A stretch of DNA of 64,000 nt, from positions 43,462,001 to 43,526,000 of the forward strand of contig NC_134469.1 in the NCBI RefSeq assembly GCF_964194025.1, written 5' to 3'. The position numbers and the translations under genes were made by a program. The stretch's first letter is position 1, and every line of letters begins with the position of its first letter. This DNA is from Convolutriloba macropyga. Taxonomy: Eukaryota. The notes beneath the pieces were generated by a model, which saw only the letters and a list, made by a program, of their open reading frames with translations, ran no database searches and was not told where the DNA came from. Shown in pieces: positions 3,340 to 64,000 of this stretch.

Positions 3340-3471
3340 NNNNNNNNNNNNNNNNNNNNNNNNNNNNNNNNNNNNNNNNNNNNNNNNNNNNNNNNNNNNN
3401 NNNNNNNNNNNNNNNNNNNNNNNNNNNNNNNNNNNNNNNNNNNNNNNNNNNNNNNNNNNNNNNNNNNNNNN
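3340..3471. other. Assembly gap
   Basis: Run of N. Confidence 1.
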
Positions 3472-3713
3472 TTTGAAGTAGTAGAAAAAGTTGATCTTGG
3501 GACAATATGAAATTTACTATTATTCATTTTGGCACTTAAATTGGCATCACCTATATTTTTTTTTCGGTGACCACTATCAACTTTTTTTTCCAGAAAAGCA
3601 GAAAGCAAGGTCATTGGACCCAAAAAAAAATTTAATTTTCACTTTCAAAAATTTTTCCTCGAAGTTGTAAGAGTTGAGTTATATACCATTTTGAAGCAAA
3701 AATTTTGTCGTAC

Positions 3714-3747
3714 TGCCAATATGAAACATCAAAATTTCATTTTGGCA
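3714..3747. promoter_or_regulatory. loxP/FRT-like 13-8-13 inverted-repeat site (candidate recombination site)
   Basis: TGCCAATATGAAA-CATCAAAA-TTTCATTTTGGCA; arms are 12/13 complementary around an asymmetric 8-bp spacer. Function is inferred. Confidence 0.35.
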
Positions 3748-4984
3748 TCACTAAATCTTGGTAGTAAGAAGAACCGAAACAAATTTTTTTCGTCTTAAAA
3801 TCTAATACAAAAGTCAAATTTGTGCCAACCAATAGCTCAAAATTTAAAAAAACTAATTTTTATTTCAAAACCAAAGTGCTGCATACAATGTATGTACACG
3901 AGTGTTGGCCAAAATGAGTCGGATTAAAATGGACTCTAATCGGATTAAAATGTTCGTGCATTTTAAACATGTCCAATTTGTTCAAACTAAATTTGCATGT
4001 GCACTTGTTTGCTGGGACTTGAAACAAAATTAGTGCAAAAGCCAAGAATTAGTTGATACAATCTAAACTATCAGTGCAAAAGCCAAGCGTTTGCATATAA
4101 ACCATATGCAGTCTACCACTGAAAAATCATGATGGATGTCAAATTGTGTAAATATAAATAAATGCTTTAGGATGATGGATGATGAGGTGGACAGAAGGAA
4201 GTCTCACTGGACGTATCACCCTTGATTCATTAGTCTCTCTGTAACTGTCACCCATCGTGTTAACATTGAACTTTTACATATAGGAATGTTGACAATAATT
4301 GTGCATACATGACTTAATAAATTCTTGATTATTAATTTTTTTTCAATCGTGTAACAATTTAACTAACGTAGCAGTTAATTATAAACTGTAAGCGATATGG
4401 TTACTCATAAGCTTCAGATAAAACTCGATTACAGATAAGACTGTATTGTTCGCTCTTTTTGCGCTGTCTTTGTCTGCTTCATTGTCATGATGCCAGTCAC
4501 ACTTAGAGGTTACAATGATATTATATATCATTACGATATTATGAAAGGAATGAAATTATGAAATCAAATACTGAATGGAATGTAGCAACATTATGAAATC
4601 AAATACTGTATGAATTATCGGTGCAATTTCATCACAAATGAGGGACGATTGTAACATAGTTCCCCAAATGAGGGACAATTGAAACATAAATATGTAAACG
4701 TACTGCATTTGGCAGAAAAGAAAATTGAACAACGAGAAAAGAAAATTGAACAACAAATGCATACTGCATTTGGCTACTGAATTACTCACAAAGTTATCAA
4801 CATGGATCACAAATGATTATGAAAATTATGGATTTATCAACTGAATTATGTAAGAAAGTGAGGCACAGTAAGTAAGTGAGGCCTTGGCACAGTGCTGTCA
4901 ATTAAATCTTCAGAGCACTTACTAATTGCACTAATGAGTGTTTTATAGTTTTGACAATGTTCTTACATTTGCTGGCAAACAGGA

Positions 4985-6025
4985 TTACAGATCCTTGTGA
5001 CCCAATTCATGATCCGAAATGTCAACCTCATATTCCTCGTATTCATCAAAATTTGAGTCCGAGTCACTATCCTCCTGAGGGCATTGTTGAATTGAACTTT
5101 TAATCATTTGACGATTGTCGGGTAATTGCGCGGGTTGGAATGATGATGCGCTGCAAGATGGCCCTTGTACCACGATTTCATCATCTATCTCTGTATCGGA
5201 TGCTAGTTCCCCAAAACGGCTTGTTGTTTTGCGGAGACGTTTGCTTCTACGAAATCCAGTTTCTTGTCGAATGATCCTTACTGGGGGTGCTGAGTGATAA
5301 GAACTAACTGAATTATCTGGGCTAGCAATTCTTACTTGTTTATTGGTCGGAAATTCTTTCGAAGATTTTCTTTTGGAACTTCGTCTCTTACTTGTCCTTG
5401 ATACTTTCCGTTCTGGAATTTTAATTCTGATCGCCTTTTTGGTGTTAGATTTCGATGGGTCTCGGCTGGGATCAGTCTCTGACTGTTTTCTAATTGAAAT
5501 TTCCCCCGACATTTTCTTTAATGAAGTTGAGACGTGTTTCTGCATTCGTTCGACCATAGCGTCTATTGCGTTGCCACTCTTGTCCACTGGTTGGATGAAC
5601 TGCTCAAGTGGAGTATTCCTCTGTTCTGGTGTTCCGAATTTTGCTAAGTCTGCTTTATGTATATCAGTGTCGGGTCTACCCGGTACGCGTATCGTAACGG
5701 TTGAGTCTGAAGTCTTTATAATTGATGCTCCCGCTGGTATTGTCTCATAAAGTCCTTCAAGACTTTTTCTCCTGCTCTTAACATTTGAGTTTTTCCGTGC
5801 GAATTTGATTCGGGTACTCGAAGGATTGACTGGCTGTGAACTCGATGACGGAAGAAATTTGAACAAGTTCTGAGCACTAGTTGCCTCTCTGATTCGGTCT
5901 TTATTTCGTTTAATTTCTTCTTCACTTAGTAAGTCTTCGTCCCTCCAATTTGAATCATCTATTAGTTCCTCTGAGCCGAATGTGTCATAATCTAAACAGT
6001 ATTTCGCAACATTATCCCATGACAT
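4985..6025 (-). CDS. 346-aa ORF, probably the C-terminal part of a Ty3/gypsy-type integrase plus a basic/Ser-rich and acidic tail
   Basis: Uninterrupted ORF directly downstream of an integrase HHCC ORF. TVTIRVPGRPDTDIHKADLAKFG resembles the integrase C-terminal beta domain. Confidence 0.5.
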   Translation of the reverse strand: MSWDNVAKYCLDYDTFGSEELIDDSNWRDEDLLSEEEIKRNKDRIREATSAQNLFKFLPSSSSQPVNPSSTRIKFARKNSNVKSRRKSLEGLYETIPAGASIIKTSDSTVTIRVPGRPDTDIHKADLAKFGTPEQRNTPLEQFIQPVDKSGNAIDAMVERMQKHVSTSLKKMSGEISIRKQSETDPSRDPSKSNTKKAIRIKIPERKVSRTSKRRSSKRKSSKEFPTNKQVRIASPDNSVSSYHSAPPVRIIRQETGFRRSKRLRKTTSRFGELASDTEIDDEIVVQGPSCSASSFQPAQLPDNRQMIKSSIQQCPQEDSDSDSNFDEYEEYEVDISDHELGHKDL

Positions 6026-6114
6026 GTTTGTGTCTTAACATTATCCCTGTTTTAAAATTATAATATGTATATTTCTTTTGACCATCGTAAATAGGTCTGG
6101 TAGAATTGGTACTA

Positions 6115-6684
6115 TTAGCTTAGTACAATTGGCTTTAAGTTCTTACCAAACTCTGTGCACGCTTTACACAGTCGAACCCTATTGAGTAAATCTCTGTTGC
6201 AAAATGGCCACCACACTCGCGTTGCCAGTTCCGTCATGCCCCAACTTCCAGGGTGTGTAGCATGGAATACATCTGAAACTGCCTCTTTAATGCTGTTAGG
6301 AATTGCGACTCTATTGTCGACAAATATGCAACCGTTCCTTGTGCTCAATGATCTCCAATGAGCATGCACTTGTTTACTAAGTTTGCGACATCTTTCTTCG
6401 TCGTTTGAAATAATGCAATCTCTGATTTCTCTTAGTATAGAATCTCTGTTGGTAAGGGCAGCTAAGAATTTTGAGTTAAACAATTGTCGTACATTTGAGT
6501 CTAGGTCGGAAAATGTGGGCATCATGATAGGAGTACTGGCTTGCGTTTGGTGACAAGTAGGAGGCTTTGAAGGAGACAAGTAATTTCTAAGATTGAAATT
6601 ATTTACAATAGGGATTTCATTCGTGTAACTTGGTTCGGACGAATTATCAGACATATTTGGAGAATATGTCTGAGAATTTGGCAA
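6115..6684 (-). CDS. Ty3/gypsy pol fragment with integrase HHCC zinc-binding domain; DDE core missing
   Basis: LSTRNGCIFVDNRVAIPNSIKEAVSDVFHATHPGSWGMTELATRVWWP...CKACTEFGKNLKP matches the integrase H2C2 motif. Only relics (PIYDGQK/EIYIL) remain in 6026-6114. Confidence 0.8.
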   Translation of the reverse strand: MPNSQTYSPNMSDNSSEPSYTNEIPIVNNFNLRNYLSPSKPPTCHQTQASTPIMMPTFSDLDSNVRQLFNSKFLAALTNRDSILREIRDCIISNDEERCRKLSKQVHAHWRSLSTRNGCIFVDNRVAIPNSIKEAVSDVFHATHPGSWGMTELATRVWWPFCNRDLLNRVRLCKACTEFGKNLKPIVLS

Positions 6685-6867
6685 AGCGAGTTATTAGCGC
6701 GTGATTCACTTTCTACGCTTTGGTAATTACATTCTTTGCATTCTTTGCATTCTATCGTCCTACGCTTGCGTAAGTAATAGAGTTGTTTGAGTCATGTGGT
6801 TTCTGAACGATCTGAACGTGCGGCGTTTGTTTACTTGTTTTGTAAATGTTCTGCGTTTGCTTCAAAT

Positions 6868-7400
6868 TGTTCCGCGTTGTTGCACACGTGCTTTGATTGA
6901 AGCTACCCCTGACTGGGAAGTGTATTAGCTATGAAAATTAGCTATACCAAATTATACTAAATGTTCCGCGTTGTTGCAAACGTGCTTTGATTGAAGCTAC
7001 CCCTGACTGGGAAGTGTATTAGCTATGAAAATTAGCTATACCAAATTATACTAAATGTTCCGCGTTGTTGCAAACGTGCTTTGATTGAAGCTACCTCTGA
7101 CTGGGAAGTGTATAACCTATGAAATTTAGCTATACCAAATTATAATTAATTTGAACGATTGAACAAATGCAAAACAAATTTAGAAATTCAATATCACCCA
7201 ACAACAAGCTACCCTTGACTGGGAAGTGTATTAGCTATAAAAATTAGCTATACCAAAATATACTAAAGGTGAACAATTGAACAAATGCAAAACAAATTTA
7301 GAAATTCAATATCACCCAACAAGAAGCTACCCTTGACTGGGAAGTGTATTAGCTATAAAAAATATCTATACCAAAAAATACTAAAGGTGAACAATTGAAC
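6868..7400. repeat. Tandem array: five copies of a ~62-bp core at spacings 94, 94, 118 and 118 bp
   Basis: Core AAGCTACCCYTGACTGGGAAGTGTATTAGCTATRAAAATTAGCTATACCAAAWTATACTAAA at ~6900, 6994, 7088, 7206 and 7324. Confidence 0.95.
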
Positions 7401-8365
7401 TTCATCGCGTTTCATGGTTGCATACTTTGTGTTTCACAAATGCAAAACAGATTTAGAAATTCAATAAGATCACCCGCTCGTCTGCAGCGAGGAAACCCCA
7501 GCACGGAAAGTGCTGTATTCGTTATGGAGACGGGCTGTCATGGTGGTGGGTATAGGTACACATACGGATTGTTAACGGTCAACAACTTGAGACAGCGTAG
7601 TTAGTTTTCCAGCAGTGAACGAGTGACCTTAGTTGTTAGTATATATCAAACACCTAGTTTCCATGGTACAAAAATTAAGTATTCTTGCTCATTGTTTTCA
7701 CGCTAAAATGTCGGATACCTATCATCATTCTTCAGTCCTGAAAAGCTCAGCTAATAAAAATAATTATATCAATTCCTAGCTTTAAACGGTTTAAAATCAA
7801 ATTACAATGTATTACTTTGCAGTTGTTGAAAAAAGGGCTCAGTTACATTTGACTTACATTATAAGCAAGTTTTAATTGCCGTCTGTGTTTTAATTTCAAA
7901 ACTTCGCTGTATTGTAAATGCAATCGTGCGACCTCTATTGGAAAATATTTTCATTTGTTTTACAATCGTCAAACGATTGTTATTGATACATAATTAAATC
8001 AATTCAAAGGTCGATTGTGACATTCAATCATCACCAAAGAAATGGTCAATCATCAATGAAACTTATCATTTATGTAATAATAGCCAGTAGGTGATGCCCA
8101 AAAACTTGATCGATAAAAGAAAATTGATTGACCCCCGTTTGGCCCCTATCACGTCAAAATGAATATATTTTCATTTGGGTTTCTACTCATCTAAGTAGAT
8201 TAGTTTAATATTTAATATTTAATATTATGACTCCAAATCTACAATGCTCTGAATCATCATCTAAAGTTCGGTTTGAGGGGACCGTCACCTTGAACTGGGC
8301 AATTTTTGAAAGGGGGATTTTTACAATCCCCCACCCAAGAACAATTGCATATTATATATCATTTA

Positions 8366-8430
8366 CAATCGTGTAACGATTGATGAACAATCGTGTAACG
8401 ATTGATACATGCAATCGTGTAACGATTGAT
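8366..8430. promoter_or_regulatory. Three tandem dyad sites CAATCGT-GTA-ACGATTG upstream of the SET-YR gene
   Basis: Perfect 7-3-7 palindromes at 8366, 8388 and 8412; another with a CAA spacer at 7963. Confidence 0.5.
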
Positions 8431-8750
8431 GAACAACTTCAAAAGAGACATTTCTAATGATCATTTCTAATGGTAAAAGATAATGGTAATTATAACCGAT
8501 AATTAGTCATATTTTTATTGACGCTAATCGATTAAAAGTTAATAACTACTACTTGCACAATAAACAAATAGATGAACAAAGTTAATAACTAGTACTTGCC
8601 TCATAAACAATTAGATAAACAAATTATCGCAGACTCTTTTTCTTTTTGGACTCAAATTTCAGGCCACTAAAACTATTTCAAAATTATGCCATTTTAAAGT
8701 AAACTCTTACAACAATAAGATTCAAATCTTTGTCATATTCAAATCCAAAA

Positions 8751-10165
8751 ATGGTTAAATTGCGAAGTCAGACAGCACGTACGCGAACCCTCAGAAACAG
8801 AGTTATTGCTGATGACAATCACAATAACAACAACAATAATAATAGGAAGGGTAAGTTGAGCAAGAAACGAAGTCGCGAGCAGCAGTCCGACGAAACAAGT
8901 GCTGGAAAACGATTTCAGCCCGACAGCCCGACGATAGACGATAGACAACCCGTACAAGATGTACACGAGGAACCCGAAGATGTTGGCACAGATATTGTAA
9001 ACGCAAACTGGCAAATTCTTGGTTTTATAGATGCTGAGCTCACTGAAAAGTTAATTGACTGCCAAACGTTGGAAACACACAAGCTCTGTTTTCATTCAGA
9101 CTTTCAATCTCTTTTATTGAGAGATCCGAAAGCAAAAGCTCTGTACACGCAGATGTTCAAATCATATCTCGACTCCCTTGAAAATGTTAGTTTCCTCACT
9201 ACTTCAAAATATGAACCACAAGATGGCTTTACACAGATGCGCGTTGTCGCCAAGAAGAAATTCAGGCCGAAAACAGTCATCTCAGGTCTGGAGGGTTTTA
9301 CAGAAACTGTCTCTGATGACGAGCTCACGGAGGACATGTCTTTTTCGGTTTTTGCCCCCACAAACAATTTTAAGAGCACACGGATTATGCTCGGACCTGC
9401 TTCATTCGTCAATCACGAATGCAACCCAAACGCCCGATATGTTGTGTCCGGTGAAAAGAACAAAACGATCATATCAATTCAGGCAATTAGAACAGTCGAA
9501 ATTGACGAAGAAATTTCAGTTTTTTATAGCCCTGATTATTTTGGAGATAATAATAGGAATTGCCAGTGCACCACATGCATGAAAGAAGCACCGAGTGATG
9601 AAGCAATCGTTCAAGTCTCACCCAGTGAAGCAATCGTCGAGGAAGCACCGAGTGATGAAGCAATCGTTCAAGTGTCACCCAGTGAAGCAATCGTCGAGGA
9701 AGCACCAAGTGATGAAGCAATCGTTCAAGTGTTACCCAGTGAAGCAATCGTTGAAATCGTACCCATCCGTGAAGCAATCGTTGAAATGTTACCAAATGTT
9801 GAACAAGCAGACGTCGAGGAAGCACCGAATGATGAAGCAATCGTTGAAATGTTACCAAACGTCGAGGAGAAGGCTCGACTCCAACGACCAAAGAAAAATA
9901 AAACTGATCCCGTTCTGGAGTGCCTAATTTGTCATGCCGTTGTCAAGAGAATGGACAAGCACTTGCAGCAACACAATGACATTCTCGAAAAAGCAGAGAT
10001 AACCTTTATCATCGATTTCTACAGGACAAAAAATGTACAGAAGAAGCACAAAATCTACGACTGTATGGCTTGCTACAGACGATTTGCTTCTCTGGTGACG
10101 CACAAGTACACCAACAAGTGCGATTGTTCTGCAGTCACGAGAGTGGAGAATCCGGAAAGCAGGGC
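8751..10165 (+). CDS. Exon 1 of SET-ZnF-tyrosine recombinase fusion: SUV4-20/Set9-type SET and post-SET domain, acidic repeats, two Zn fingers
   Basis: ATG at 8751. Motifs IDAELTEKLIDCQTLETHKL, FSV, LGPASFVNHECNPN and EEISVFYSPDYFGDNNRNCQCTTC match KMT5B/C motifs (THKM, LGPAAFINHDCRPN, EEISCYYG..FFG..NEFCECYTC). Zn fingers CLICHAVVKRMDKHLQQH and CMACYRRFASLVTHKYTNKC. Donor GC|GTAAGT. Confidence 0.88.
9585..9870 (+). repeat. Coding minisatellite (57-nt unit, EAPSDEAIVQVSPSEAIVE) forming an acidic linker
   Basis: GAAGCAATCGT recurs every 27-30 nt; frame is preserved. Confidence 0.95.
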
Positions 10166-10534
10166 GTAAGTGATAAAGTTATTTTACTCGGAGACCATTT
10201 TTGTTGAGTCAAACGTAAGACAATTGCATAAACAATCCAATGTTAAATCAAACGTCTGACAATTGCAAAACAATTAAATGTTGAATCAAACGTTTAACAA
10301 TTGCATAAACAATATAATGTTGAGTCAAACGTTTAACAATTGCATAATAAACACTCCAATGCATAACCAATTTATTGTTTACTAAAACGTCTGACAATTG
10401 CACAATAAACAATCCAATGTTGAGTCAAACGTCTGACAATTGCATAAACACTCCAATGTTGAGTCGAACGTCTGACAATGTTGGGCAATAAATTACAATG
10501 TATTTCGGTTGAGTTATATTTTTGTTTGTTTTAG
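10166..10534 (+). other. Phase-2 spliceosomal intron (369 nt) made largely of ~39-bp tandem repeats
   Basis: GTAAGT donor and TTTTTGTTTGTTTTAG acceptor. Splicing gives GC|T (Ala) and joins the two ORFs in frame. Unit AATGTTGAGTCAAACGTCTGACAATTGCATAAACAATCC occurs about 7 times. Confidence 0.85.
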
Positions 10535-12146
10535 TTCACTTCCAGACAATCTAAGAGCCAAATTGAAGTCCTCAGTAATTGCGAGGACCAGCGATTTAGA
10601 AATTGCCCGCAGGTTCACTGAGCACCAAAAACAGTTGGCAAAATGTGCGGGCAATGAATATTGCAACGAGGACAGATCAGGCTTAATTCAGTTGATGGCT
10701 GTATTGTATGGGGAAACACAAGGTCTGAGGCGACCACAGCAACTATTACAAGCTTGCCTCCAGTTGCAAGAGCGAAGAGGATTGAAGCCTCAAACGATGC
10801 TAAACTATCTCGCAACTTTCAGCAACTTCGTTGATTACTGTTTTTTGTATTCAGACGGTGTCTCCAACAGGATGGAACGAGAGCACTCAACGATGTTGGC
10901 GGCAATTAAAAGTGTAAGGAAAGCGTTCTCCACTGCAGCTATTAAGAACTATCGTACCACAGCCAAACAATTGCGAGCCCGGGTCCCGTCGATTGCTCTG
11001 GTACGAAATCGTCACAAGCTGGCCTTGAGTCATCTAAAGGACAACTTAGCAACATCTACCTTAACGTACAAGCAACAACAGGCCCTAAATTTCTTTGTGC
11101 TACAAGGTAGACTTAATGTACGGTCTGGACCCTTACTGGCACTCACTTGGGAGGACGTCAAGTACATTGAAGAAAACAGCGTTCTGGAAACTGATAGGCA
11201 CAAGACGGGAAAGTTTTATACGCTGTATTTGAAAATAAAGGCCGATCAAATACCGCTGCTTTACAAGTTAAAGGAGACATTTGCCGACGAGAATGATTCA
11301 ATGGAGTCGAAGTATGTCTTCAGCTCGAAGCAGAACAAAATTGAGCGGTCCATTTCAAAACACATTCAGGAAACTTTCTTTACTCTATTCGGCGATGACC
11401 CAAACGAAGTGCGATTTAACGCCAACTCCATCAGAAAGTATTGGGAACGCCGATGGAAAAGTTTCATTGGCAAGGTTCCAGAAGGGGTGACAAAAGCGCA
11501 TTTGGCACAAACGGCTCACAACAAGACAACAGCTGAGGATATCTACATTGGTAGAGAGGGAACCTCAGAGGACCGCGACCAGCTGTTGTCGATATATTGT
11601 GACGATTTGTCGTCAGATATCCCACCGGAAGAAGCCGAAGAAGCAGAAGTAGACGACAAAGAGTCTGATGTAGAGTCTGACTTTGAAGCGCCCGAAGAGC
11701 CACATCCCATTGATCCACAGACGCCAATGGAGAAGCCTATATGTTCGGAACCAATCGTACGGCGATTCAATGCAATTAGGCCGTCAGTTAACCTAACCCC
11801 AATTAACCCGGTTACTCCAACAGAACAACCTGCTGCAAACGTGACTCGGGAACAAACGGTTACTGCAGACGCTCGACGGAGGTCAACTATAGGTCAGAGT
11901 AGTGAAGACGTTCTCCGAGAGAAGTTTATAAAGTCTTTGAAATCATTCCGCGTCAAATCGGGAGCCCCCGCGTGGACTGACCCCGAAAAGAAAGCATGCT
12001 TGCTGTTTTCCGGAGTCAGTTCCACAGTTTCAGTTCCCGACATCAAGGCACGATGTGAGGAAGCTGGAATTAGATTATCGAACGATGCGCATTTGCGGAT
12101 ATACACAAAACTAAAGTCTGCTGTTCAAGTATTCAAACATAGATAA
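10535..12146 (+). CDS. Exon 2 of SET-ZnF-tyrosine recombinase fusion: core-binding and catalytic YR domains, acidic stretch, C-terminal Myb/SANT-like helix region
   Basis: LKPQTMLNYLATFSNFVDY (core-binding helix); NVRSGPLLALTWEDV (Arg, 11121); HKT (Lys, 11202); YVF; NSIRK (HxxR position, Arg 11433); AHNKTTAEDIY (His 11517, Tyr 11544); WTDPEKKA...IYTKLKS tail. Confidence 0.85.
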
Positions 12147-12171
12147 ATTTTTTATTGTTTTAGCCATTATA

Positions 12172-12290
12172 TTTGTTTAACCTTGTTTAACCTAGTTTAA
12201 TTGTTTAACCTTGTAACTTAACATGTTTAACCTTGTAATCATAACTTAATGTTTAACCTTGTAATTGTTTAACGTTATTTAATTGTTCAA
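12172..12290. repeat. Short TGTTTAACCT repeats in the 3' region of the SET-YR gene
   Basis: About 7 degenerate copies. Confidence 0.85.
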
Positions 12291-12697
12291 TCATAACTTA
12301 CCTAAAGTACCTGTCTTTTCTACCAAGAGTACTATGTTTAATCAGTCGTCCGACGATTTTAGTAGTGAAAAATAGACCAAACGTCCGACGCAATGTTTGT
12401 TTGTCTGTAAAATTTGAGAAAAAAGTCTGTAAAATTTGAGAAAAAGTTAATTTTTTTAAAAAATAGTCTGTAACTACTGTAAAAAATTTGGTAGTAAAAA
12501 ACGTATTCTCAATACCAATTTGAAAAATATTGTAAAAATTTAGTAGTAAAAAACTTAATCTCAATATCATATTAAAAAAATTGATCTGAAATGCCAATTT
12601 GAAACCCTTACAACCACCCTTACTACTTTTTTAAATTGGCATTTCAACAAAAATGTTGTTTCAAATTGGTATGAGCTTTACACTTTTCGCTTCAAAT

Positions 12698-12989
12698 NNN
12701 NNNNNNNNNNNNNNNNNNNNNNNNNNNNNNNNNNNNNNNNNNNNNNNNNNNNNNNNNNNNNNNNNNNNNNNNNNNNNNNNNNNNNNNNNNNNNNNNNNNN
12801 NNNNNNNNNNNNNNNNNNNNNNNNNNNNNNNNNNNNNNNNNNNNNNNNNNNNNNNNNNNNNNNNNNNNNNNNNNNNNNNNNNNNNNNNNNNNNNNNNNNN
12901 NNNNNNNNNNNNNNNNNNNNNNNNNNNNNNNNNNNNNNNNNNNNNNNNNNNNNNNNNNNNNNNNNNNNNNNNNNNNNNNNNNNNNNNNN
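12698..12989. other. Assembly gap
   Basis: Run of N. Confidence 1.
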
Positions 12990-14830
12990 TAGTAGTACAT
13001 AGGCTTTAGGACCAGAGTAGGGGTGAAAATTCACCCTTCGGTTTTCAGCTGGCACAATTTTCTCGGCAGGTTTACAGGAGCCACAGAGACAGAGAATTCG
13101 CCAGGTACAGGGTTCAATCTTAGCTCCTATCGAAGCATTCGTGATACATCTTTGTCAGTCTTGATTTTTAAAACTCATTCTCAGGTATGTGCTTGTTTAA
13201 GATGTTCATAGGTCGCACAGTCCTTGTCCAAAAAATGTATCGGTCTTCTTCAAACTGTTAAAAAGAAATTTGAAATTTTTGTTTTGCCGCTTTTCTTTTT
13301 GGCTTTTCGTTTTGGCTTGGCACATTGCCTTGAAGAATAGAACATTGTGTGATTTGAGACACAACGATACAGACAGTACATTGAGTTATAGTTTTCGCTG
13401 TTCGTAGTCAGCTTCTTTTCCGCATATCCATGCAGTGACTTTGCCTTCACTCTTTCAAGCCATTTCAGGTCAGTTTTTGATGCGTTCCAGACCTGGGAAG
13501 CGTAGGTTTGAACACGCACTACGTAACCAACGTACGCATTCAGTTTTGTGACGGGATTGGCTTTGTGTAAACAGTTTCTTTTCAGGAACCAGAAGGATCG
13601 CCAGGCCTTGGCTGTTCTTTGAGAGAATTTATCACTCCAGGAGAAATTTCTAGATATGATTTCCCCAAGGTCCATTTGCTGCAGCACCACTTCGAGTGAA
13701 TAGCCGGATTTGCATGATGCGCTTCCTTGCGGACAAAGTTTTTTGCTTTTCTAGACGTTTATGGACATATGGTTGTCTTCACACCAGGCTCGAATCTTTT
13801 CAACAACCCAATTTGCGTTAGTTTTGCTCTTCATCATCACTTTGAAGTCGTCAGCATAGCCATACGATGAATAAATATCAACGGCTCTGAGAAGGTCGTT
13901 AGCGCAGGCAAGGAAGAGGAGAGGCCCTTGGATAGACCCTTGGGGAACACCACTGGTCACATCCCTAAAACTTGACCTGGCATTGTTTACCTTGTCACAT
14001 TGTTTACGTTCTCTGAGGTAGCTGCTTAAAAGATTGAGCAGTTTTCGACCAATGCTGAAGTTTGGTAGCTTTTCGAGTAGCTTTTCAGAGGCAACTAGGT
14101 CAAAAGCTTTTTTTAAGTCCACGTAGAGGGCATATAATTGTTCACTCTTTGCCGAGTTGCAGAGTTCATTCACTTCTTTTAGGTAGAGAAGGAACTGCAG
14201 AACTGCCGAACCTTTGTGGCGGAAACCAAATTGTATTTTATCAAGCTGTGCTTCAATGATTGGATACAAGTGCTGGAAAACGAATTTTTCAGAAATTTTG
14301 GACACGTTTGTGAGCAGGCTAATCGGCCTGTACAGACTTATATCGGCTTTGTTATTCTCATTATAGATGGGTGTCACTTCGCTGAATATCCATTGGGATG
14401 GGAAGGATCCTTTGTTGATGCAGGTTTGAAAGACAAGGAGAAGCGATTTTGAGAGCTTCGAGAGGTTTTTCAGGACGGTGTTACTAATGTTATCTGATCC
14501 ACAAGCTTTGTTTGCATCCAGTTTTGAAAGCGCAACCTTGATTTCATCCTCCGAGAGTTTGGTGAAAATATTTTCTGTTTTCTCGTAAACTTGGTCAGTA
14601 GACAATTGACCTTCCACGTTGAAAACATTTGAAAAGAAATTATTGAATAGTTCACTTTTTTCCAGATCGTCAGATGTGCGGGCGATTTTGATTTGGTTAT
14701 GATCATCAATGATTGCGATATACATATCTTTGCTTTTGTGTAGTGACTTGAGATATTTTTGTAGATCTGACATTCGCCTGCTGCGAAATATTTTTTCTTC
14801 AAAACTGTTTTGGTCGTTCTCAATCTCATT
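12990..14830 (-). mobile_element. 5'-truncated, decayed CR1/L2-group LINE (RT ORFs 13751-14773 and 13250-13690) with (TAC)n tail running into the gap
   Basis: YRPISLL, QFGFR, DLKKAFD, GVPQGS and YADD motifs; frameshifts and stops; 3' UTR hairpin GGGTGAA-AA-TTCACCC at ~13021. Confidence 0.92.
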
Positions 14831-16899: not shown

Positions 16900-19800
16900 C
16901 AGGTTAATTCATTGTTTTGTTCTTTGTTGGGGTTTCTGCTTCCTTGAGACTTAAGAGTTTCGAGGGCAAGGAGATCTCGACTTCGGGACTTGACTTTGAA
17001 ATGTCTCTGAGGTCCAACTCCATTAGGGACCCATGCGGTCATTGCGCACTGCAGGTCAAAGATGATGGACATGGAGCTCTACAATGCCATAGGTGTGACT
17101 TCTGGATCCACCTAAAATGTACTTCTGTTCCAGGGGCCCTGTTAACTCACTTGAAAAAAGTTCAAGGATTGGTTTGGCTTTGTGAGTCTTGTGAATCTCC
17201 AGCTAAAGAAGCACTCTTCGTGTCATCTCCCAAAGTTGACGAAGTCCGGAAACTTCGTGAAAAAGTTGACGAGCTGAAAAAGAATTTCGTATCCGTTAAT
17301 GAGGTCAAACGTGATATGACGGAGATAAAGTCCTTGGTCAATTCGTCTTCATCGGAGGTCAATAACATCAAAATTGAACTGTCGAAACCCAAGCCTCGCC
17401 CAACTGAACCGACTGCGGTGACAGCAAAACTTCTCGCAAACTCGATTTTGGGCCGCTCAATACTGGTATTACTCAATACCAGTAGTAGTACTTTCCAAAG
17501 TCAATGGGACAAACGGATGGCCCTGTCAAAGTCTTATATGCTGAAGAACACCGAGTTCTTTCTGAAACCAATGCTAACTCCGGAAAACGAGCCCTGGAGA
17601 AACAACTGCTCAATTTGTGTTTCAAGCGATCAATTCTAGGCATCCCAAACACAAGATGAAAACTTTGAACTTGAAACTTTGTCATGGGAACGCTGTTTTG
17701 GACCACTCCAAAGCCCCATATGTTCTAGCAAAGCAAATTAAAGATAATTGACTAGCTGATGACTTTTACGTTTCTTTTCTTCTTCTGAGCTGTCGAGGAA
17801 TGCTCTCGCTAGAAAAACGAGCTGTCCTCGCAGTCCTCCTGCATAAACACCAACCACAATTGGCTTTTCTCACCGAGACACGGCTAGATACCACGCTTGA
17901 AAACAGTGAATTGTCAGCTGGGGGATCGTTTTCAGTTTCTGGAAGACAACACCACATGCAGGGTTGACATGGCGGGACTCTGATTTTGCAGAACACTTCC
18001 AACATATTATGTGCAGAGTTCTTTGGCAATCCTGTAATAAGCAACGTCGACTTTTGTACTTCAGCCTTGATCAAATTTGACGATCGTCTTGTCTTCTTTA
18101 GTTTGGTCTACCTGCCCCCACAATTAGTCAATATGAGGTCACCGGTACTTCCTATACACCCTATCCGATGTTTTCCGGTACATCGAAACTCGGTTCTTGG
18201 ATTGACGTTGCAAATGCTTTCAATGATTTATTTGCTTCGAACTTCAACACTAAATTGTACCTAACAAGGACATCAGATGACAGCCAAAGTCTTATTTTCT
18301 TCATTGATTTCTGTGGTTCATTTAGCAACTCCGATATTCTTCAACTAATTTTAACCAGCACCGCTTGCACTTATGAGACCCATGATGACTTCCCGAATGG
18401 ACTATTGAAGAAATGCTCTGCTCTTTTTGCAACATTTTTCCGGATCGTCTTCAATTGCGTAATCCTGAACTGCCAATTCCCCGAATAATGGAAGTCTTCA
18501 TTTATTAAACCTATTCACAAAGGAGCTTGCCGGAACGACATCACCAATTACCGTCCAATTACCGTCAATTAGTCTGCTGCTGAAGATCTCCTTGATATTC
18601 GAAAAGTTACTCGACAAGTTTCTTATTGATCTACTCAAGAATAAAATTTATCCGAGACAATATGGTTTCCAGTCTATGAAATCTACGATTTGTCAGCTTC
18701 TAGAATACGTCAACTACCTCTATCTCAACAAGGGAGACATACCATTCTCAATATTCTTCGATTACGAGAAAGCCTACGATCGTGTGCCGCATTCCGTTCT
18801 CCTAGTGAAACTCCGAAAAATTGGTCTGCACTCGAATTTTGTTTCCTTCTTTGAAAGTTAACTTGTTACCTTGTCAGAAGATTTTAAGCAGTACGAATCA
18901 ACGGGTTTTCATTGATGCACACAAGAGTATTGGGTGGCGCACCCCAGAGTTCAGTATTTGGGCCCCTGCTATTCTTGATTTTTACCAACAACCTGTCGTG
19001 TATTCTTCTGGACAGTATTATGTGCTTATTTGCTGATGACGCGAAACTAGTTTTCAACTCATTGAATTTCAATGATGATTTTGTACGTTTCTGCAATTGA
19101 TATCGAGCAAACGGGATTTTAGTCAACAGGAAAAAGAGCCAATGTATTTCTTTTGGGACTGTCGAGCTCATGTTAGAGTACGCCAATATCACAATTCCAC
19201 AACAAGAGTGCGCGAAGGATCTCGGAGTTTATGTCAACAGAATGTTAAAATGGAGCACGCATGTAAAGTCACCAACAGCCGAAGAGCTTTCTACAAGTTT
19301 AAAAATACTATACCTTGGAGCACTTTATCACATATCAAGTAAAAGCTCTACGTCGCCTATGTTGTTCCAATACTCCTCTATGGTTCCAATACTCCTCTTT
19401 ATCCACAAAAAGTGCTTGAAGTGGGTTTATGGGAGTTCTAGGAACTACTTGGACACTGTTCTCACGCATAAAATCCTACCGATGGCCTTTCGAATCCAAG
19501 TTGATGACTGCCGACTGTTCATTCTCTTGAACCAGGGGAAGCTACTGAGGGACTGTGATAATGTTGAAGTGTTATCTCTCGGTGTGACGAGAAGACGGAG
19601 AAACAAGTTCAAAGTCTCAAGCGTAAAGTAGCCCCCGGATTTTTCTACTAACGGTCCTTCAACATGATCAACTTTTTCTATCGTCATGGGATAATCGATG
19701 ATGATTACTTCAAGATCAACAAGATTGTTGAACATCTTGAATCCATCATCCCATGTTTCAATCCCTGTTTTCGATGCTCATGGTTTGTTTGTTGTAATTG

Positions 19801-19910: not shown

Positions 19911-21444
19911 AACGCAAGATCAGTCAAACTTGTTTGAAACGCTCAAGATTTATCATTATGAACACTTTTCCAATTATGATAACCAATTTGTTATGATAAA
20001 ATTTTTAATTAGATATGATACTTTGTGATGTTCCGGCACAGTTGGGATAAAAATTTATCACTTAACCATTTTTCTTCTGTCTGAGAGTCAACTAAGGCAA
20101 ATCGCTTTGATCCTGGGACCGTTTGATTTTTGCCTTCAAGGCAATAGCAGGTTCAGTCGTTTTTTGTGAGTTCTACCCTTTACTTCCTGTTTTCTTAAGT
20201 TTTTTCTTTTCTACCTTTTAAATTTGCCGCTGTTTTCTGACAACACAATGCACAGGTCACTTCAGCTCAGGCACTTTCATTTTTTTCCTTTCCAATACCA
20301 AACTTCAAAACTATGGCTCTAAAACTAGAGAAAGTTTCGCAACGCAGAGAACTCCTAGAAACCTTTACAACTCTTCAAAAAGATAATGTGATTATTGTAA
20401 CATTTTATTTTGTGAATGGTTTGAGTATACAGAATGCAAGTATATTAAGGTGTTTGGCAAGTCGAGTCCTAACACTCAGATAACACCCAAATTTGACAAA
20501 ATTGTTAAATGTTTCAAAGCGCGTTTCCTCATGCGTTTTCCTACAAATGCAAGGTTCCAAATTGTCTCGGAAAAAATTGACAAGATCAAATTGAAAGACC
20601 ATTGTATCTTATATGTCTTTCCTAAGCTAACCTATGTGGGCTGAAAGGAAAACGAATAACCTGAGTTCAGTGCTAAATCAGGGGATTAGAGCTAACAATA
20701 CCCCAATGCTGACTGGAGACAATTTCATTTCGATAAGAAAATCAATGAAATTGAAAAGAAAACTTACTATATTAGTTTCACCTAAGCTTCATGTGGCAAG
20801 TTTAATGACAATTTTACCCCAAACAATGCACGCAATTGTGAGAAGCTATTAAAAACAACGCTCAAATTGGTACAATCTAAACGGTCCTTCATTTTTTTCA
20901 GAGCCTTTTATCTCAAGCAATCACAATTTTCAAAGCATAATGACTTTAATTGCCAATAGCTCTGGAGCCGAACCAAACGTTCGTGCCCCTCTGGTGCTCA
21001 AAGATTTCGTCTGTAAATAAAACGGATTTGCATGTTTAAAGTTTTTGAGACGCTTAAGGAAACTAGTAAAACTGATTGCAGTTAACAAGGTATCTGAACA
21101 GTGAAAACCTTTCATTTCGGATCAACTGATTCCGCTACCTAAAATTGACGGCGGGTTTCGCCAGTATCTGTTGGAAATGCATTACGCTGATTGTTTAAAT
21201 ATGGGGGTATATTGTCGTTCTTACTTTTTTGAAATGTTGTGTAAAAGTTTTTGAAGCACGTGAGATGTATTTCGATGATAAACTATTTGGATTTGGAATT
21301 TGAGAGGGCTAAGAGAATGCCACACATTTTTAAGAAGCTTCCATTACCCCCTCCAAAACTACAGTTCAACTTAAGATATATTTGTAGATGCCTTCAACAC
21401 ATTAAATAGGGAACCAATGTTGAATTCTGTACGCAACTTCAGAG

Positions 21445-21643
21445 NNNNNNNNNNNNNNNNNNNNNNNNNNNNNNNNNNNNNNNNNNNNNNNNNNNNNNNN
21501 NNNNNNNNNNNNNNNNNNNNNNNNNNNNNNNNNNNNNNNNNNNNNNNNNNNNNNNNNNNNNNNNNNNNNNNNNNNNNNNNNNNNNNNNNNNNNNNNNNNN
21601 NNNNNNNNNNNNNNNNNNNNNNNNNNNNNNNNNNNNNNNNNNN
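21445..21643. other. Assembly gap
   Basis: Run of N. Confidence 1.
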
Positions 21644-23122
21644 NCAACACATATTTACATCTGTTATCAATTTACTTAAAAACATTCCTATTCCGGATTT
21701 TTCAATTTTGTCCATGTTCTTGTATTTTTAGGGTTTATTCCGAATTTGCCCTAACCATAAGTATCCCTCTTGTGGAGGTTTTGCAAATTTCGTTTTGTCA
21801 TGCACAAAATGTTTTTTGCCCTATGCATTCACATTTAGTCAAAATTATTATTTGAACTAATATTTTAGCGTGAGTTCCCTCCCCCTATATTCGTCGCGTG
21901 TGTTTAGTGCCGGCTTCAGCTTGCTGATATATATAGCTTCGATGATCATTAGTTTTTCAACTGACCGACAGGCGTCCAGAATTCTCCATTCAATGTCATT
22001 CGTGGCGCCACGACATTCAACTAGATGTTGACCCACCTGTGAATCCTTCTTTTGATGTTCTGTTATCCTTGTGGTAACATGCCGGCTTGTTTGCCCAACA
22101 TAGATGGATCCGCATCCATTACATTTAATTTCATATACCACGTGGGATTTCAGATCTCTATCAAAGGATGATTTCAGGGTGGGGAGGCACGATCTTAATT
22201 TTCGCGTTGTAAAAACTACTTGCAATTCGCATAGTTTCTTCAATTTGCTTGCGAAGTTTTGAGTGAGGTTGCCTCTGTATTGTAGAAAAATAGTTGGCTT
22301 ATCATTAGATTTAGTCTTGCTTTTTTGATGATCTTTTGGTGTTGTTCTTAATTGGTCTTTACCGCCACTTATTATTTTTTCTAGAGTCTGATTCACAATT
22401 TTTGAAGACCATTCCTCTGGATATTGATTTTTGGTCCAGCAAGATTTGTTCTTTTCAAGAGCCTGATCGAAGGCCAACCAATTAGAGGTTGCATTAAAAA
22501 CCCTGTGAACCGTCCCTTGAATCACATTTTTCTTATGTTGAAGCGTGCACAGCTGCGAAAATTCAGTATTATTCCAGTGTCAGTTGGTTTTTGATACCAA
22601 TGACAGGTGATATTATTTTTGCTGCTCACATTTACGTTAATGTCAAGAAAAGCCAAACCCCCATCCATGTTCATCTTTAGCCACTTCGATTTTTTGAAAC
22701 TGATCTGAGTTCAGTACCTCATCAAGTTTTTCCCTGTACGTTGACTTCTTCATCACACAGAAACCGCAACCTTTGTCAAATGGTACCAACAGCAAATCAT
22801 TGGCTTTTAGGTAATCATGCACTTTTTTGACCCCTCTATCCAATGGGGTTTCACGTACATTTTTTGCATACCATTTTGCGGACGCCTCAATTTCACAAAG
22901 TTTCTCACCCTCAGTGTTATTCTCGCGTAACTCACGTACAAGTTTGTCTACATCTGCGAGAAAGTGCACCTCATTAAACTTGTCTCTCACTGGGTGTTTA
23001 GGTCCCAACGATAGGATGTCAAGTACAAACTTTGGAAGTTCCGGGCCATCCATTATCACAACATTACTGTGGGAGCCATTCCGCAGTGGTCTATCCTGTC
23101 TCTCTGACAGTTTATCAAGTTT
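21644..23122 (-). mobile_element. Penelope-like retroelement fragment: N-terminal region, RT thumb and GIY-YIG endonuclease; RT core deleted
   Basis: LSLGPK and PFDKGCGFCVM (N-terminal PLE motifs); LAFLD and WYQKPTDTG (thumb); VVYEIKCNGCGSIYVGQTSR...RITEH...EAIYI...LN (GIY-YIG with CxxC). Confidence 0.9.
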
Positions 23123-24611
23123 TCAAGAGACTAAGGAAGTTTCCGTCGGAATGGAAAATTGGCATCGTATCACCCATATTCAAAGACAATGATAGAGAAG
23201 AAGTATCCAACTACCGTCCTGTGACACTACTGAACATAGTCTCAAAACTATTCGAGAAGTTCATGTTTCGAGCACTGATGAAAGCCTTCGGAGCAGAAAT
23301 AAGTAACTACCAATACGGATTCCGAACGAAACGTTCTGTTGTTCTTCAATTACTCTACAGCTTGACCCAAATTTACAAAATGGTTGGATCTGCACATTCC
23401 TTGAACTTTCTTGTCCTACTTGATTTTTCGAAAGCCTTCGATAAGATCAAACACAGCCAGCTCCTACGGAAATTACTACAACTTGATTTGTCTGAGGGAG
23501 TATTTGAATTAGTACGTGACTACTTAAGCGGTAGAACCCAAAAAGTTAAAATCAACAATGTTAAAAGCGAACCCCTCGTGATCTCAGCAGGCGTCCCCCA
23601 AGGATCTGTCCTTGGCCCGCTCCTATTCTTGATATACATAAATGACCTTCCCAATGTTGTATTTTCTTCAGTTGCCCTGCTCTTTGCAGATGATCTCAAG
23701 GTGATATTCAACGGAGATGACACCTCAGTACAGAAGCTACAGGAGGACATAAATAACTTACATTATTGGAGTGTTCAAAATCATCTGTTGTTCAATAGTA
23801 AGAAATGCTCTGTAACCGAATTCAAAGTTGGAAATCGACCAAAGACTCTGAACCAGATGCAGTTCATGCTTGGTAATAACCCGATTGAAAGTAAGGACCT
23901 CGTTAAAGATGTTGGTCTGGTTGTAAATCGGCATCTAAACTGGGGAGACCATGCTAAACACCGAGTCGGCAAAGCAATGAAGTCACTGTTCCTTCTGCGA
24001 CGAAACACTTCTATGGCTTTACCACAGGAATCAAAAGTACACTTGTACAGAGCGATTATTTCACCAATCCTGCTCTTCTCATCGGAATGCTGGGAACTTA
24101 GGAAATCTGAATACCAGATCATGGAATCCTTCCATAAGAAAGCAATGAGATGGATCTGCGGGAGTATTGACTACAAGGACGCTATTTTAAAATCGAATCT
24201 ACTACCACCACTTTATTTTAAAGTATTGAAAGATCTGTTGATGTTGAGTAGCCTTCTGAGCGGCAAGTATGATGTGGAATTCTCAGAAATCCGAGTTGTT
24301 GGAGAGGACAGAAGGAAAAGAGTGGCACTCCCAGAGGTCAAATATGAGGTTCAGAGACTGAACTTCTGGTACAGAACGGGGTTTCGAGTGAACGTCATCC
24401 AGAAAGTGATGGACTTCTTCTGTGAGCAGCAACTGAAGAGGAAACTCATTGAATACATGTGGAGCTATTTGGAAAGAAACTGGAATGAGCAGAATCCTTG
24501 CACATGGACATTCATTTGTATCTGTGAAAACTGTCGCACATCCTAGAACCTAACAGCGGAAATAACATTCCAGTGGCATATCCACGAAGTCATAATAATA
24601 ATAATAATAAT

Positions 24612-62079: not shown

Positions 62080-64000
62080 ATTTAAGAAAGAAAGAAAGAA
62101 AGAAAGAATAAATTTCTCCAAATATTAGACAGCAAATTAAATCAATTTAATTAAAACAATTACTTAATCATATAACATAACAACAAAACGTATCTCGGAG
62201 AGGACAGATAGACGGGGTTATTAAACCCACCTAGTATCTGCCCTGGCTAAAGTTAAATAGTTACAGTTAAATATTTAACATTCCATGACCAGGTCACCGG
62301 TGCCAACGCCTAGGCAAACAAACCTCAGAACGCTGTCATAGAGACATGAACAAGGAACAATGCTTAATCGGAAGAACGACTAACACTGTGTCTTTGCTAA
62401 CGAGAGAGACGTTGATTCCTAGCTACTATGTATCAAATAAATAAAAAAAAATTTTTTCTGCAGTTCGATTTTCTTGGTCGATTTTCTATGTGTAGACTCC
62501 GTTATTTTGCAAAAATAATACCATTTTTGAAACCTCGGCACTTACGAAGTAAGTGCCGAAACAATTTTTGACTGGAGTTAATGGAAAAGAAAAGAGAAAA
62601 AAAAATATTTAAAAATATAGGATACTAGCTCCTCATTATTCAGCAAGTAACTTTCTTTGAATTTATGATAAAATTGCGATATTTTTTGCCAATTTTCGTC
62701 TTCAATATTTTGTGCTAGAACTTCATTCTTTCTCAGTATGTTAAATAACCTTGCACAACGATATGAAATAGAGGATCGCTCAAACTGCTTTTTAAAGGAG
62801 GGAATTTTTAGGTAATTTTTGGTAGACCTTCTAGTGTTTCTGGTACTATGCTCATATTCAAAGAGTTCATTTAGATAAGTTTCGCTATGCATCTTTTTCA
62901 ATGATTTCAGGACAAATTTCAGCAGCTCATATAAATGAAACTCGAATACTGTTAGCAATTTATTAGAGATAAAAATGTCCCTGGAACTACCTGACAATTT
63001 CCTGAAGTAAATGAATTTTAAAATTTTTTTCTGCAGATTGTAGATAGGTAAAAGCGACGAATAACTGCAACAGCCATATACCAAAATACCGTATTGAATT
63101 ATTGGGTTAACATTGCTTCGGTAGTAATCAATTAACTGTTTTCGGGGTACATAGTGACGCAGCTTACATATAATACCACACTGTTTTGAGAGTCTTTTCT
63201 TAATATATTCTATATGTGATTGAAAGCTTAACTTACTATCTACCAAGATTTCGAGATACTTACAAAGATTTCCAACTTCAATAAAAACATCATCAAACTT
63301 AAACACTGATTTGGAAGCACTAATTTTGTTCCCTATATTCATTTGTACGGTTTTTTCCATATTTAGTATTAACTTATTAGCAATCAACCAATTATTGATG
63401 TTCTGCAGATCTTCTTGCACTGAATTATTGTCTTTATTGATTGCGGTGAGGTTTGTATCATCCGCAAATAAAATAACATCAAGAGATTTGCAAACTGTTG
63501 GCAGATCATTGATATAAATGAGGAACAATAACGGACCCAAAATTGAGCCTTGTGGAACCCCACAAACTATGGAATTCCACGATGAACAGGCCCCATTAAC
63601 AATAACCCGCTGCTGTCTCCCATTTAAGTATGATGTTATCCAAGTTAAAGCTGGGCCCCTTATACCAGTGTTTTCGATCTTTTTTAATTAGATATCGTGC
63701 TCAATGGTATCAAAAGCTTTTTTAAGATCAAGAAAGAAACGGATAACGTTTACATTTTGGCAATTCAATCTTATTTTTTCGACTAATTCAACAAGAGCGT
63801 CAATTGTACTGTGTTTGGCACGAAACCCAAATTGCTTATTGAAAAGCAAATTATGATGTTCCATGTAGGCATTTATGCGAATGAACAAAGCACGTTCTAT
63901 AATTTTACTCCAAACAATTAGAAGAGAAATTGGTCTGTAGTTATTTTCATCAAGTTTTGATCCATCCTTGTGAAGGGGAATTACTTTAGCCTTTTTCAGA
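62080..64000 (-). mobile_element. LINE (L2/Crack-like) RT with one in-frame stop, long 3' UTR and (TTTC)n tail; continues past the window edge
   Basis: NYRPISLL, QFGFR, DLKKAFD, GVPQGSILGP and FADDT; AAAG repeats at 62083-62106. Confidence 0.92.

Follow-up and report, generated by a model that had tools for sequence, protein, structure and literature searches.

In the genome of Convolutriloba macropyga, an open reading frame (ORF) with a SET domain is followed by a second one with the features of a tyrosine recombinase. Do these two frames encode a single protein, and does this protein belong to a mobile element? Both questions were addressed in a stretch of 64,000 nucleotides (assembly GCF_964194025.1, contig NC_134469.1, positions 43,462,001 to 43,526,000 of the forward strand), hereafter the window, whose own numbering is used below. 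Our analysis makes it quite likely that the region corresponds to a Crypton-like DNA transposon, at least 9.2 kb long, that is autonomous and was active recently, and in which a SET domain, zinc fingers and a tyrosine recombinase are parts of one spliced protein of 1008 amino acids.

The gene was read directly from the window. Exon 1 (8751-10165, + strand) begins with the ATG at 8751 and comprises 471 codons plus two bases. Its last letters, GGGC, end at 10165 and are followed by GTAAGT, the TAA of which closes the exon 1 ORF. The phase-2 intron (10166-10534, + strand; GTAAGT...TTTTAG) is 369 nucleotides long and ends 3′ with TTTTGTTTGTTTTAG. Exon 2 (10535-12146, + strand), which encodes the recombinase, a linker and a C-terminal domain, is open from 10535 to the TAA stop codon at 12144-12146. 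The GC of exon 1 and the T of exon 2 form a split alanine codon, so that the exon 2 frame is kept. The spliced coding sequence of 3027 nucleotides contains no internal stop.

Splicing was examined by comparing relatives of the gene. The splice sites are the same in all ten loci of the element described below. A relative found in another assembly (P0060, assembly ERZ25074608, locus L016), 41-47% identical to the window protein, crosses the junction as an intronless single ORF. Residues 3-198 of P0060 align with residues 259-471 of exon 1 and residues 200-394 with residues 1-196 of exon 2. One residue stands in place of the split codon and none is gained or lost at the junction. Other relatives having the zinc finger-recombinase or the SET-zinc finger-recombinase arrangement are also single ORFs, namely P0023 (839 amino acids), P0080 (895 amino acids) and P0073 to P0114 (700-750 amino acids). 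In the L015 subfamily of the same genome, whose recombinase is 54% identical, an intron of unrelated sequence (AG/GTGAGT...TTTCAG/T) interrupts the same codon in the same phase, and a 94% identical copy (L017) retains the intron at the position and phase seen in the window. Exon 1 measures 1349, 1415, 1472 or 1682 nucleotides among copies and exon 2 measures 1612 or 1621 nucleotides; despite this variation, the joint frame is unbroken in intact copies. Finally, the first 52 residues of exon 2 are conserved and are not preceded by an in-frame ATG. Overall, these comparisons support the prediction of one spliced SET-zinc finger-tyrosine recombinase protein. It may be added that the intron is built of tandem repeats both in the window (10166-10534, units of about 39 nucleotides) and in L015 (9766-10016), the repeat units being unrelated.

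For exon 2, Pfam, a phmmer search of the PDB and two PDB profile searches returned no sequence match, or low-complexity matches to its acidic linker only. A fold search was needed. The AlphaFold model, calculated from an alignment of 38 relatives, had a mean predicted local distance difference test score (pLDDT) of 83.6. All of the top 50 PDB fold matches were tyrosine recombinases, including Cre, XerA, YopR, lambda Int and Tn1549 Int; these matches covered 340-380 columns with a probability of 1.00, but with E values of only about 1e-2. In a viral fold library, the top matches were nudivirus and baculovirus VLF-1 and phage integrases (best E value 2.3e-4). Among the 38 relatives, one matched Pfam Phage_integrase (4.3e-5) and seven weakly matched a SAM-like N-domain. 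Judged by its modelled fold, exon 2 is a two-domain tyrosine recombinase, with a core-binding and a catalytic domain (10536-11645, + strand). The catalytic positions were assigned by sequence pattern. In exon 2 numbering, the candidate residues are R196 (11121-11123), K223, R300, H328 and Y337 (11544-11546). In the 38 sequences, R196 and R300 are invariant, and conservation reaches at least 90% for H222-K223-T224, H328 and Y337. With the numbering of Cre, the spacing between R and K is 28 as compared to 27 in exon 2, and that between H and Y is 9 in both. Downstream of the recombinase, a disordered acidic linker leads to a confidently modelled four-helix domain of about 80 residues (11898-12143, + strand; pLDDT above 90) with a conserved W/K/Y pattern. 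This domain has no sequence match in Pfam or the PDB, and GCR1_C gave no match in Pfam searches of the window protein and its relatives. An identity of the tail as Myb or GCR1_C thus found no support.

In exon 1, Pfam recognized a SET domain at residues 165-259 (2.8e-8). The best matches among solved structures were KMT5B/SUV420H1 and SUV420H2 (1.6e-16 to 1e-14, residues 147-279), whereas other SET types reached only about 1e-3. The SET and post-SET region (9189-9587, + strand) contains the motifs NHECNPN, EEISVFY and CQCTTC. The corresponding patterns NHxCxPN, EEIxxxY and CxCxxC align with the core of KMT5B and with its post-SET zinc site, and they are retained in subfamilies about 50% diverged; the region is conserved in L015, L016 and P0080. 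These data support a SET domain predicted to be of the SUV4-20 type. A region-limited search for SET homologs returned element copies only, with no cellular KMT5 among its results. The SET region is followed by an acidic coding tandem repeat of 57 nucleotides, or 19 residues (9585-9856, + strand), present in 4.7 copies; the copy number varies among element copies, always by whole codons. Two zinc fingers of the C2H2/C2HC type come next (9921-10127, + strand), with the patterns C391-x2-C394...H404-x3-H408 and C438-x2-C441...H451...C457. Their Cys/His pattern is kept family-wide, and in the AlphaFold model they have a pLDDT of about 90 and weak fold matches to C2H2 DNA-binding fingers, to which little weight is given. 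A basic patch resembling a nuclear localization signal is also present, as a sequence feature only. Most of this architecture agrees with a preliminary description of the locus, which had proposed the phase-2 junction and its 1008-residue product, the basic patch, the SUV4-20-type SET and post-SET, the acidic repeats, the two zinc fingers and both recombinase domains. Only its Myb-like tail was not borne out.

The gene makes up only part of a repeat unit that is common to other copies and extends at least from 3472 to 12697, both ends abutting runs of N. Copies from assembly ERZ25071359 (L001, L003-L005, L009-L012 and L014) were compared with the window by blastn. The matches of these nine loci to the window begin exactly at 3472 and stop exactly at 12697, with none elsewhere, the flanking sequences beyond being unrelated; L004 is a left-truncated copy. 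In that assembly, the window's own locus corresponds to L002, and there the flanks do match. Across the ten loci, the gene region is 98.3-99.7% identical to that of the window. The spliced coding sequence is intact in six of them; the four others are broken, by a nonsense codon in one case, frameshifts in two and deletions in one. A protein clustering suggests many further copies: exon 1 clusters counted about 30, on different contigs, and the exon 2 cluster (P0001) had 71 members. Dispersed clusters and loci with unrelated flanks fit a young transposon family and not a syntenic host gene. Searches of ORFs and Pfam in 3472-12697 showed no reverse transcriptase, and the readable unit has no long terminal repeats. 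A DIRS-like retroelement was rejected since the unit is devoid of reverse transcriptase. An active or recently active mobile element had already been proposed, and the ten loci agree with this view, pointing to a multi-copy, recently active element and not to a single-copy syntenic host gene; what had to be revised is its extent. The gene alone does not delimit the element, which reaches at least from 3472 to 12697, includes a second gene and is bracketed by simple-repeat arrays. As a separate observation, L001 carries at 11701-13354 a tandem duplication of the final 1.2 kb of the gene region (window 11053-12253).

Two of the three N runs of the window, at 3340-3471 and 12698-12989, sit exactly at the borders of the unit, where other copies have period-3 arrays. 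The ends were analyzed in eight other copies. A period-3 array starts about 11-20 bp past each border, after non-periodic bases. The arrays span 45-700 bp and their lengths vary from copy to copy. In all eight copies, the same period-3 unit is found on the same strand on both sides, as direct repeats. This means that the element either inserts, always in one orientation, into a single type of trinucleotide array or has such arrays at its own ends. In Chlamydomonas, the termini of an active Crypton consist of the short motif at which the element also inserts, as expected for integration through site-specific recombination (PMC9977147). Crustacean nimavirus recombinases, which combine a SAM-like N-domain with a C2H2 domain, use a single simple repeat as their insertion site (PMC10871703). 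Because of these precedents, we infer that recombination in or beside the period-3 arrays is the most likely mechanism of insertion.

Selection on the protein was estimated by comparing the window with L017, which is intact and diverged. The ratio of non-synonymous to synonymous substitution rates (dN/dS) was 0.25 for the SET domain, 0.21 for the zinc fingers, 0.23 for the recombinase and 0.44 for the coding repeats, the counts being small (11 synonymous and 11 non-synonymous changes in the SET domain). Even so, in lineages that remained active, conservation of the SET domain has been as strong as that of the recombinase. A SUV4-20-like SET is also carried by relatives in a second assembly (L016) and on a metagenome contig (P0080, matching KMT5B at 8e-8). 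Another SET type, closest to SETD2 and KMT5A, occurs on P0023 and beside P0066, in line with the earlier mention of animal recombinase proteins with other SET types; many relatives have zinc fingers without SET. A recombinase-domain tree puts the two SET types into clades that are sister to each other and groups P0080 with SET-less proteins. This tree is quick and unrooted, with support from the Shimodaira-Hasegawa-like approximate likelihood ratio test (SH-aLRT) only and an unknown N-terminus for many rows. The position of P0080 implies that the SUV4-20 label requires at least two changes on the tree; SET domains have thus undergone more than one gain, swap or loss in the family.

A second gene lies on the opposite strand (4985-6654, - strand). 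It consists of an exon for an H2C2 (HHCC) zinc finger (6654-6147; Pfam Integrase_H2C2, 1.4e-5) followed by a low-complexity ORF of 346 amino acids (6025-4988). Each of the six contigs encoding the exact 346-residue product has its four ORFs, those for SET and the recombinase among them, in one and the same arrangement. A possible intron (6146-6034) would create an open frame of 518 amino acids in the window. Its donor, G/GTAAGA, is at the same codon in both versions of the gene module that were found, suggesting that the two ORFs are spliced. The acceptor at 6034 is not positionally conserved, and the splice model is therefore tentative. In L001, L003 and L017, the module is replaced by a homolog on the opposite strand, with proteins 50% and 35% identical, and the DNA on either side stays about 95% identical. 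The module occupies 4240-6842 in the window, as compared to 3403-6588 in L001, 5231-8337 in L003 and about 3084-4812 in L017. The existence of two forms looks like exchange between lineages. Copies of a palindrome are observed near the borders of the module.

This 17-nucleotide palindrome, CAATCGT-NNN-ACGATTG, is present in four perfect copies upstream of the ATG (7963-8428). Allowing two mismatches, 14 matches were counted as compared to 0.19 expected, all of them inside the unit (7963-8428, 10210-10442, 4344, 5101, 6752, 11752 and 12343). Five degenerate copies are in the intron repeats and others in the second-gene module. L001, L003 and L005 have the palindrome, which the L015 subfamily lacks. 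The zinc fingers, the recombinase or the H2C2 protein are candidates for binding to it. In the interval that separates the divergent genes, tandem repeats of 94/118 nucleotides (6868-7400) show a copy pattern that varies among element copies.

The surroundings of the unit are rich in transposons. Three reverse transcriptase ORFs, a GIY-YIG ORF (Penelope-like) and a PHD-finger ORF were seen, the surrounding ORFs being at 13751-14773 (-), 23032-24546 (+), 62578-63540 (-), 21857-22525 (-) and 16917-17639 (+). The neighbouring elements are of the BEL/Pao, Penelope-like and long interspersed nuclear element (LINE) types. At L006, a PHD ORF like that of the window precedes a LINE reverse transcriptase. 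Next to L001, a called gene (21061-21593) with a weak Pfam match to the Monjiviricetes fusion glycoprotein may be an endogenous viral fragment.

How does the element compare with known systems? A SET domain and a transposon recombinase are joined in SETMAR, a single-copy host gene that arose by capture of a DDE (mariner) transposase. In the window, the fusion is part of a mobile element, and the recombinase is a tyrosine recombinase. With KMT5B and KMT5C (SUV4-20H1/H2), the element shares its best SET/post-SET sequence match, with core motifs and four zinc-binding cysteines aligned. Only about 130 diverged residues are aligned, however, and here the domain is transposon-encoded and fused to a recombinase, its activity being predicted. 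DIRS1-type retrotransposons are also tyrosine recombinase elements with a methyltransferase-like domain, but they have a reverse transcriptase and their methyltransferase is PCIF1-like, not SET, acting on nucleic acid and thought to be inactive (PMC4738411, PMC13465315). Like the telomere-repeat-specific tyrosine recombinases of nimaviruses, the element is flanked by one simple repeat on both sides. This likeness is one of architecture only; the nimavirus enzymes reside in giant viral genomes, target a pentanucleotide and have no reported SET domain (PMC10871703).

By architecture, the parallel is with Cryptons (CryptonF/S/A/I; Goodwin 2003; Kojima and Jurka 2011, PMC3212892). As in Cryptons, a tyrosine recombinase is the sole recombinase and its gene has introns, reverse transcriptase is lacking, and long terminal or inverted repeats are absent from the readable part. 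The direct repeats on both sides of the other copies may serve as recombination substrates, the likely role of the terminal direct repeats in Cryptons. The two diverge in several respects. The DUF3504 signature of CryptonA had no match in the window protein (Pfam, E values up to 1), nor was it among the 25 best families of 22 relatives (E values up to 10) and of the 38 relatives (E values up to 1), and the GCR1_C C-terminal DNA-binding domain of CryptonF had no match in these searches either. Animal Cryptons are described as having no C-terminal domain, extra domains or terminal repeats, and the N-terminal SET, the zinc fingers and the C-terminal domain are additions not described for them. 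The H2C2 gene is another addition, and the ends abut long period-3 arrays instead of the 4-6 bp repeats of Cryptons. The likeness to Cryptons lies in the architecture; a match to DUF3504 or CryptonA was not obtained. The element appears to be Crypton-type by architecture and to represent a new lineage of eukaryotic tyrosine recombinase transposons. A search of the full-text literature and of named proteins, with Repbase and Dfam outside its scope, revealed no transposon having a SET domain fused to a tyrosine recombinase. With fair probability, the SET fusion represents a new principle.

A scheme for the element can be proposed. Its predicted main protein starts with a SUV4-20-like SET followed by acidic repeats and two zinc fingers, continues with a Cre-like recombinase of two domains and an acidic linker, and ends in a small helical domain; the divergently placed second gene encodes an H2C2 zinc-finger protein. 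The recombinase would excise the unit as a circle, following the Goodwin model for Cryptons. Reinsertion would occur by site-specific recombination in or beside arrays of the trinucleotide, as in the nimavirus precedent. The zinc fingers and the recombinase would tether the SET domain to the element or to its target, where it would methylate lysine 20 of histone H4 (H4K20) on nearby nucleosomes. The benefit would most likely be local control of the element's own chromatin, with expression and recombination dampened after insertion. That the SET domain has this specific role is put forward tentatively; the preliminary description had likewise proposed an H4K20 methyltransferase brought to the element's own sites, which is a plausible function.

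Several points weigh against the reading of the locus as a recently active transposon with a spliced, chromatin-modifying recombinase. Movement is deduced from dispersed young copies, the exact termini fall within stretches masked in the window, and the case for splicing comes wholly from the comparison of relatives. In the recombinase, the first histidine of the HxxR motif is an asparagine (Asn297) in most members. The methyltransferase activity of the SET domain, its substrate and its site of action are predictions. The SET part was also poorly modelled by AlphaFold (pLDDT below 50) because the alignment was shallow, and its fold matches to SUV420H1/H2 were weak and unreliable; therefore, the typing of the domain depends on sequence. 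The small counts behind its dN/dS value should also be kept in mind.

Other explanations were considered for the gene and the unit. Prokaryote-style gene callers give two ORFs, as expected if a SET-zinc finger protein and a recombinase were encoded by separate adjacent genes and no fusion protein were made. This is very improbable, since P0060 and other relatives read uninterrupted over the same junction, indels in both exons leave the intron phase unchanged, and the conserved start of exon 2 has no ATG ahead of it. Equally improbable is a host gene family that spread by segmental duplication, or a domesticated gene, to which the masked termini of the element would lend themselves. Indeed, ten loci whose flanks are unrelated share the same 9.2-kb unit with sharp common ends, the copies at 98.3-99.7% identity to the window include both intact and broken ones, and none of the 20 representative family clusters looked up has a record in NCBI or UniRef.

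The role of the SET domain is less constrained. Proteins that read H4K20 methylation include 53BP1 and the origin recognition complex (ORC). With the element and gene as described, the SET domain might thus aid transposition instead of silencing, H4K20 methylation on the circle or the target recruiting such readers, or the domain might methylate the recombinase or a non-histone protein. Purifying selection on SET equals that on the recombinase, which fits a role needed for propagation, and the existence of relatives with two SET types or none suggests an accessory module that was repeatedly useful. Cryptons also gain copies despite clean excision (PMC9977147). The link to reader recruitment comes, however, from general H4K20 biology and not from the element of the window, and we regard a role in transposition as somewhat unlikely. 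A catalytically inert SET, which would do no more than bind histone tails or nucleosomes and so hold the recombinase on chromatin, is improbable. In its favor, the core motif of relatives with a SET of type B reads ND where NH is usual, and the methyltransferase domains of DIRS1 are thought to be inactive (PMC4738411); in the window, by contrast, the three motifs align with KMT5B and are kept across the diverged subfamilies.

Transposons are usually the targets of host chromatin marks. Here, the recombinase of a transposon bears a likely, predicted H4K20 methyltransferase that is under selection, which lets one ask whether a mobile element sets its own chromatin state. The lineage appears to prefer simple-repeat targets and has intact young copies, making it a possible site-specific integration tool. 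More broadly, an animal transposon family may have repeatedly recruited SUV4-20-like and SETD2/KMT5A-like domains onto its tyrosine recombinase; the element would then mark histones, be it on its own DNA, on the circle after excision or at the simple-repeat target, and this marking would be integral to its life cycle. This broader proposal is made with reserve. If true, it would describe the first case of a histone writer that a transposon encodes in fusion with a transposase.

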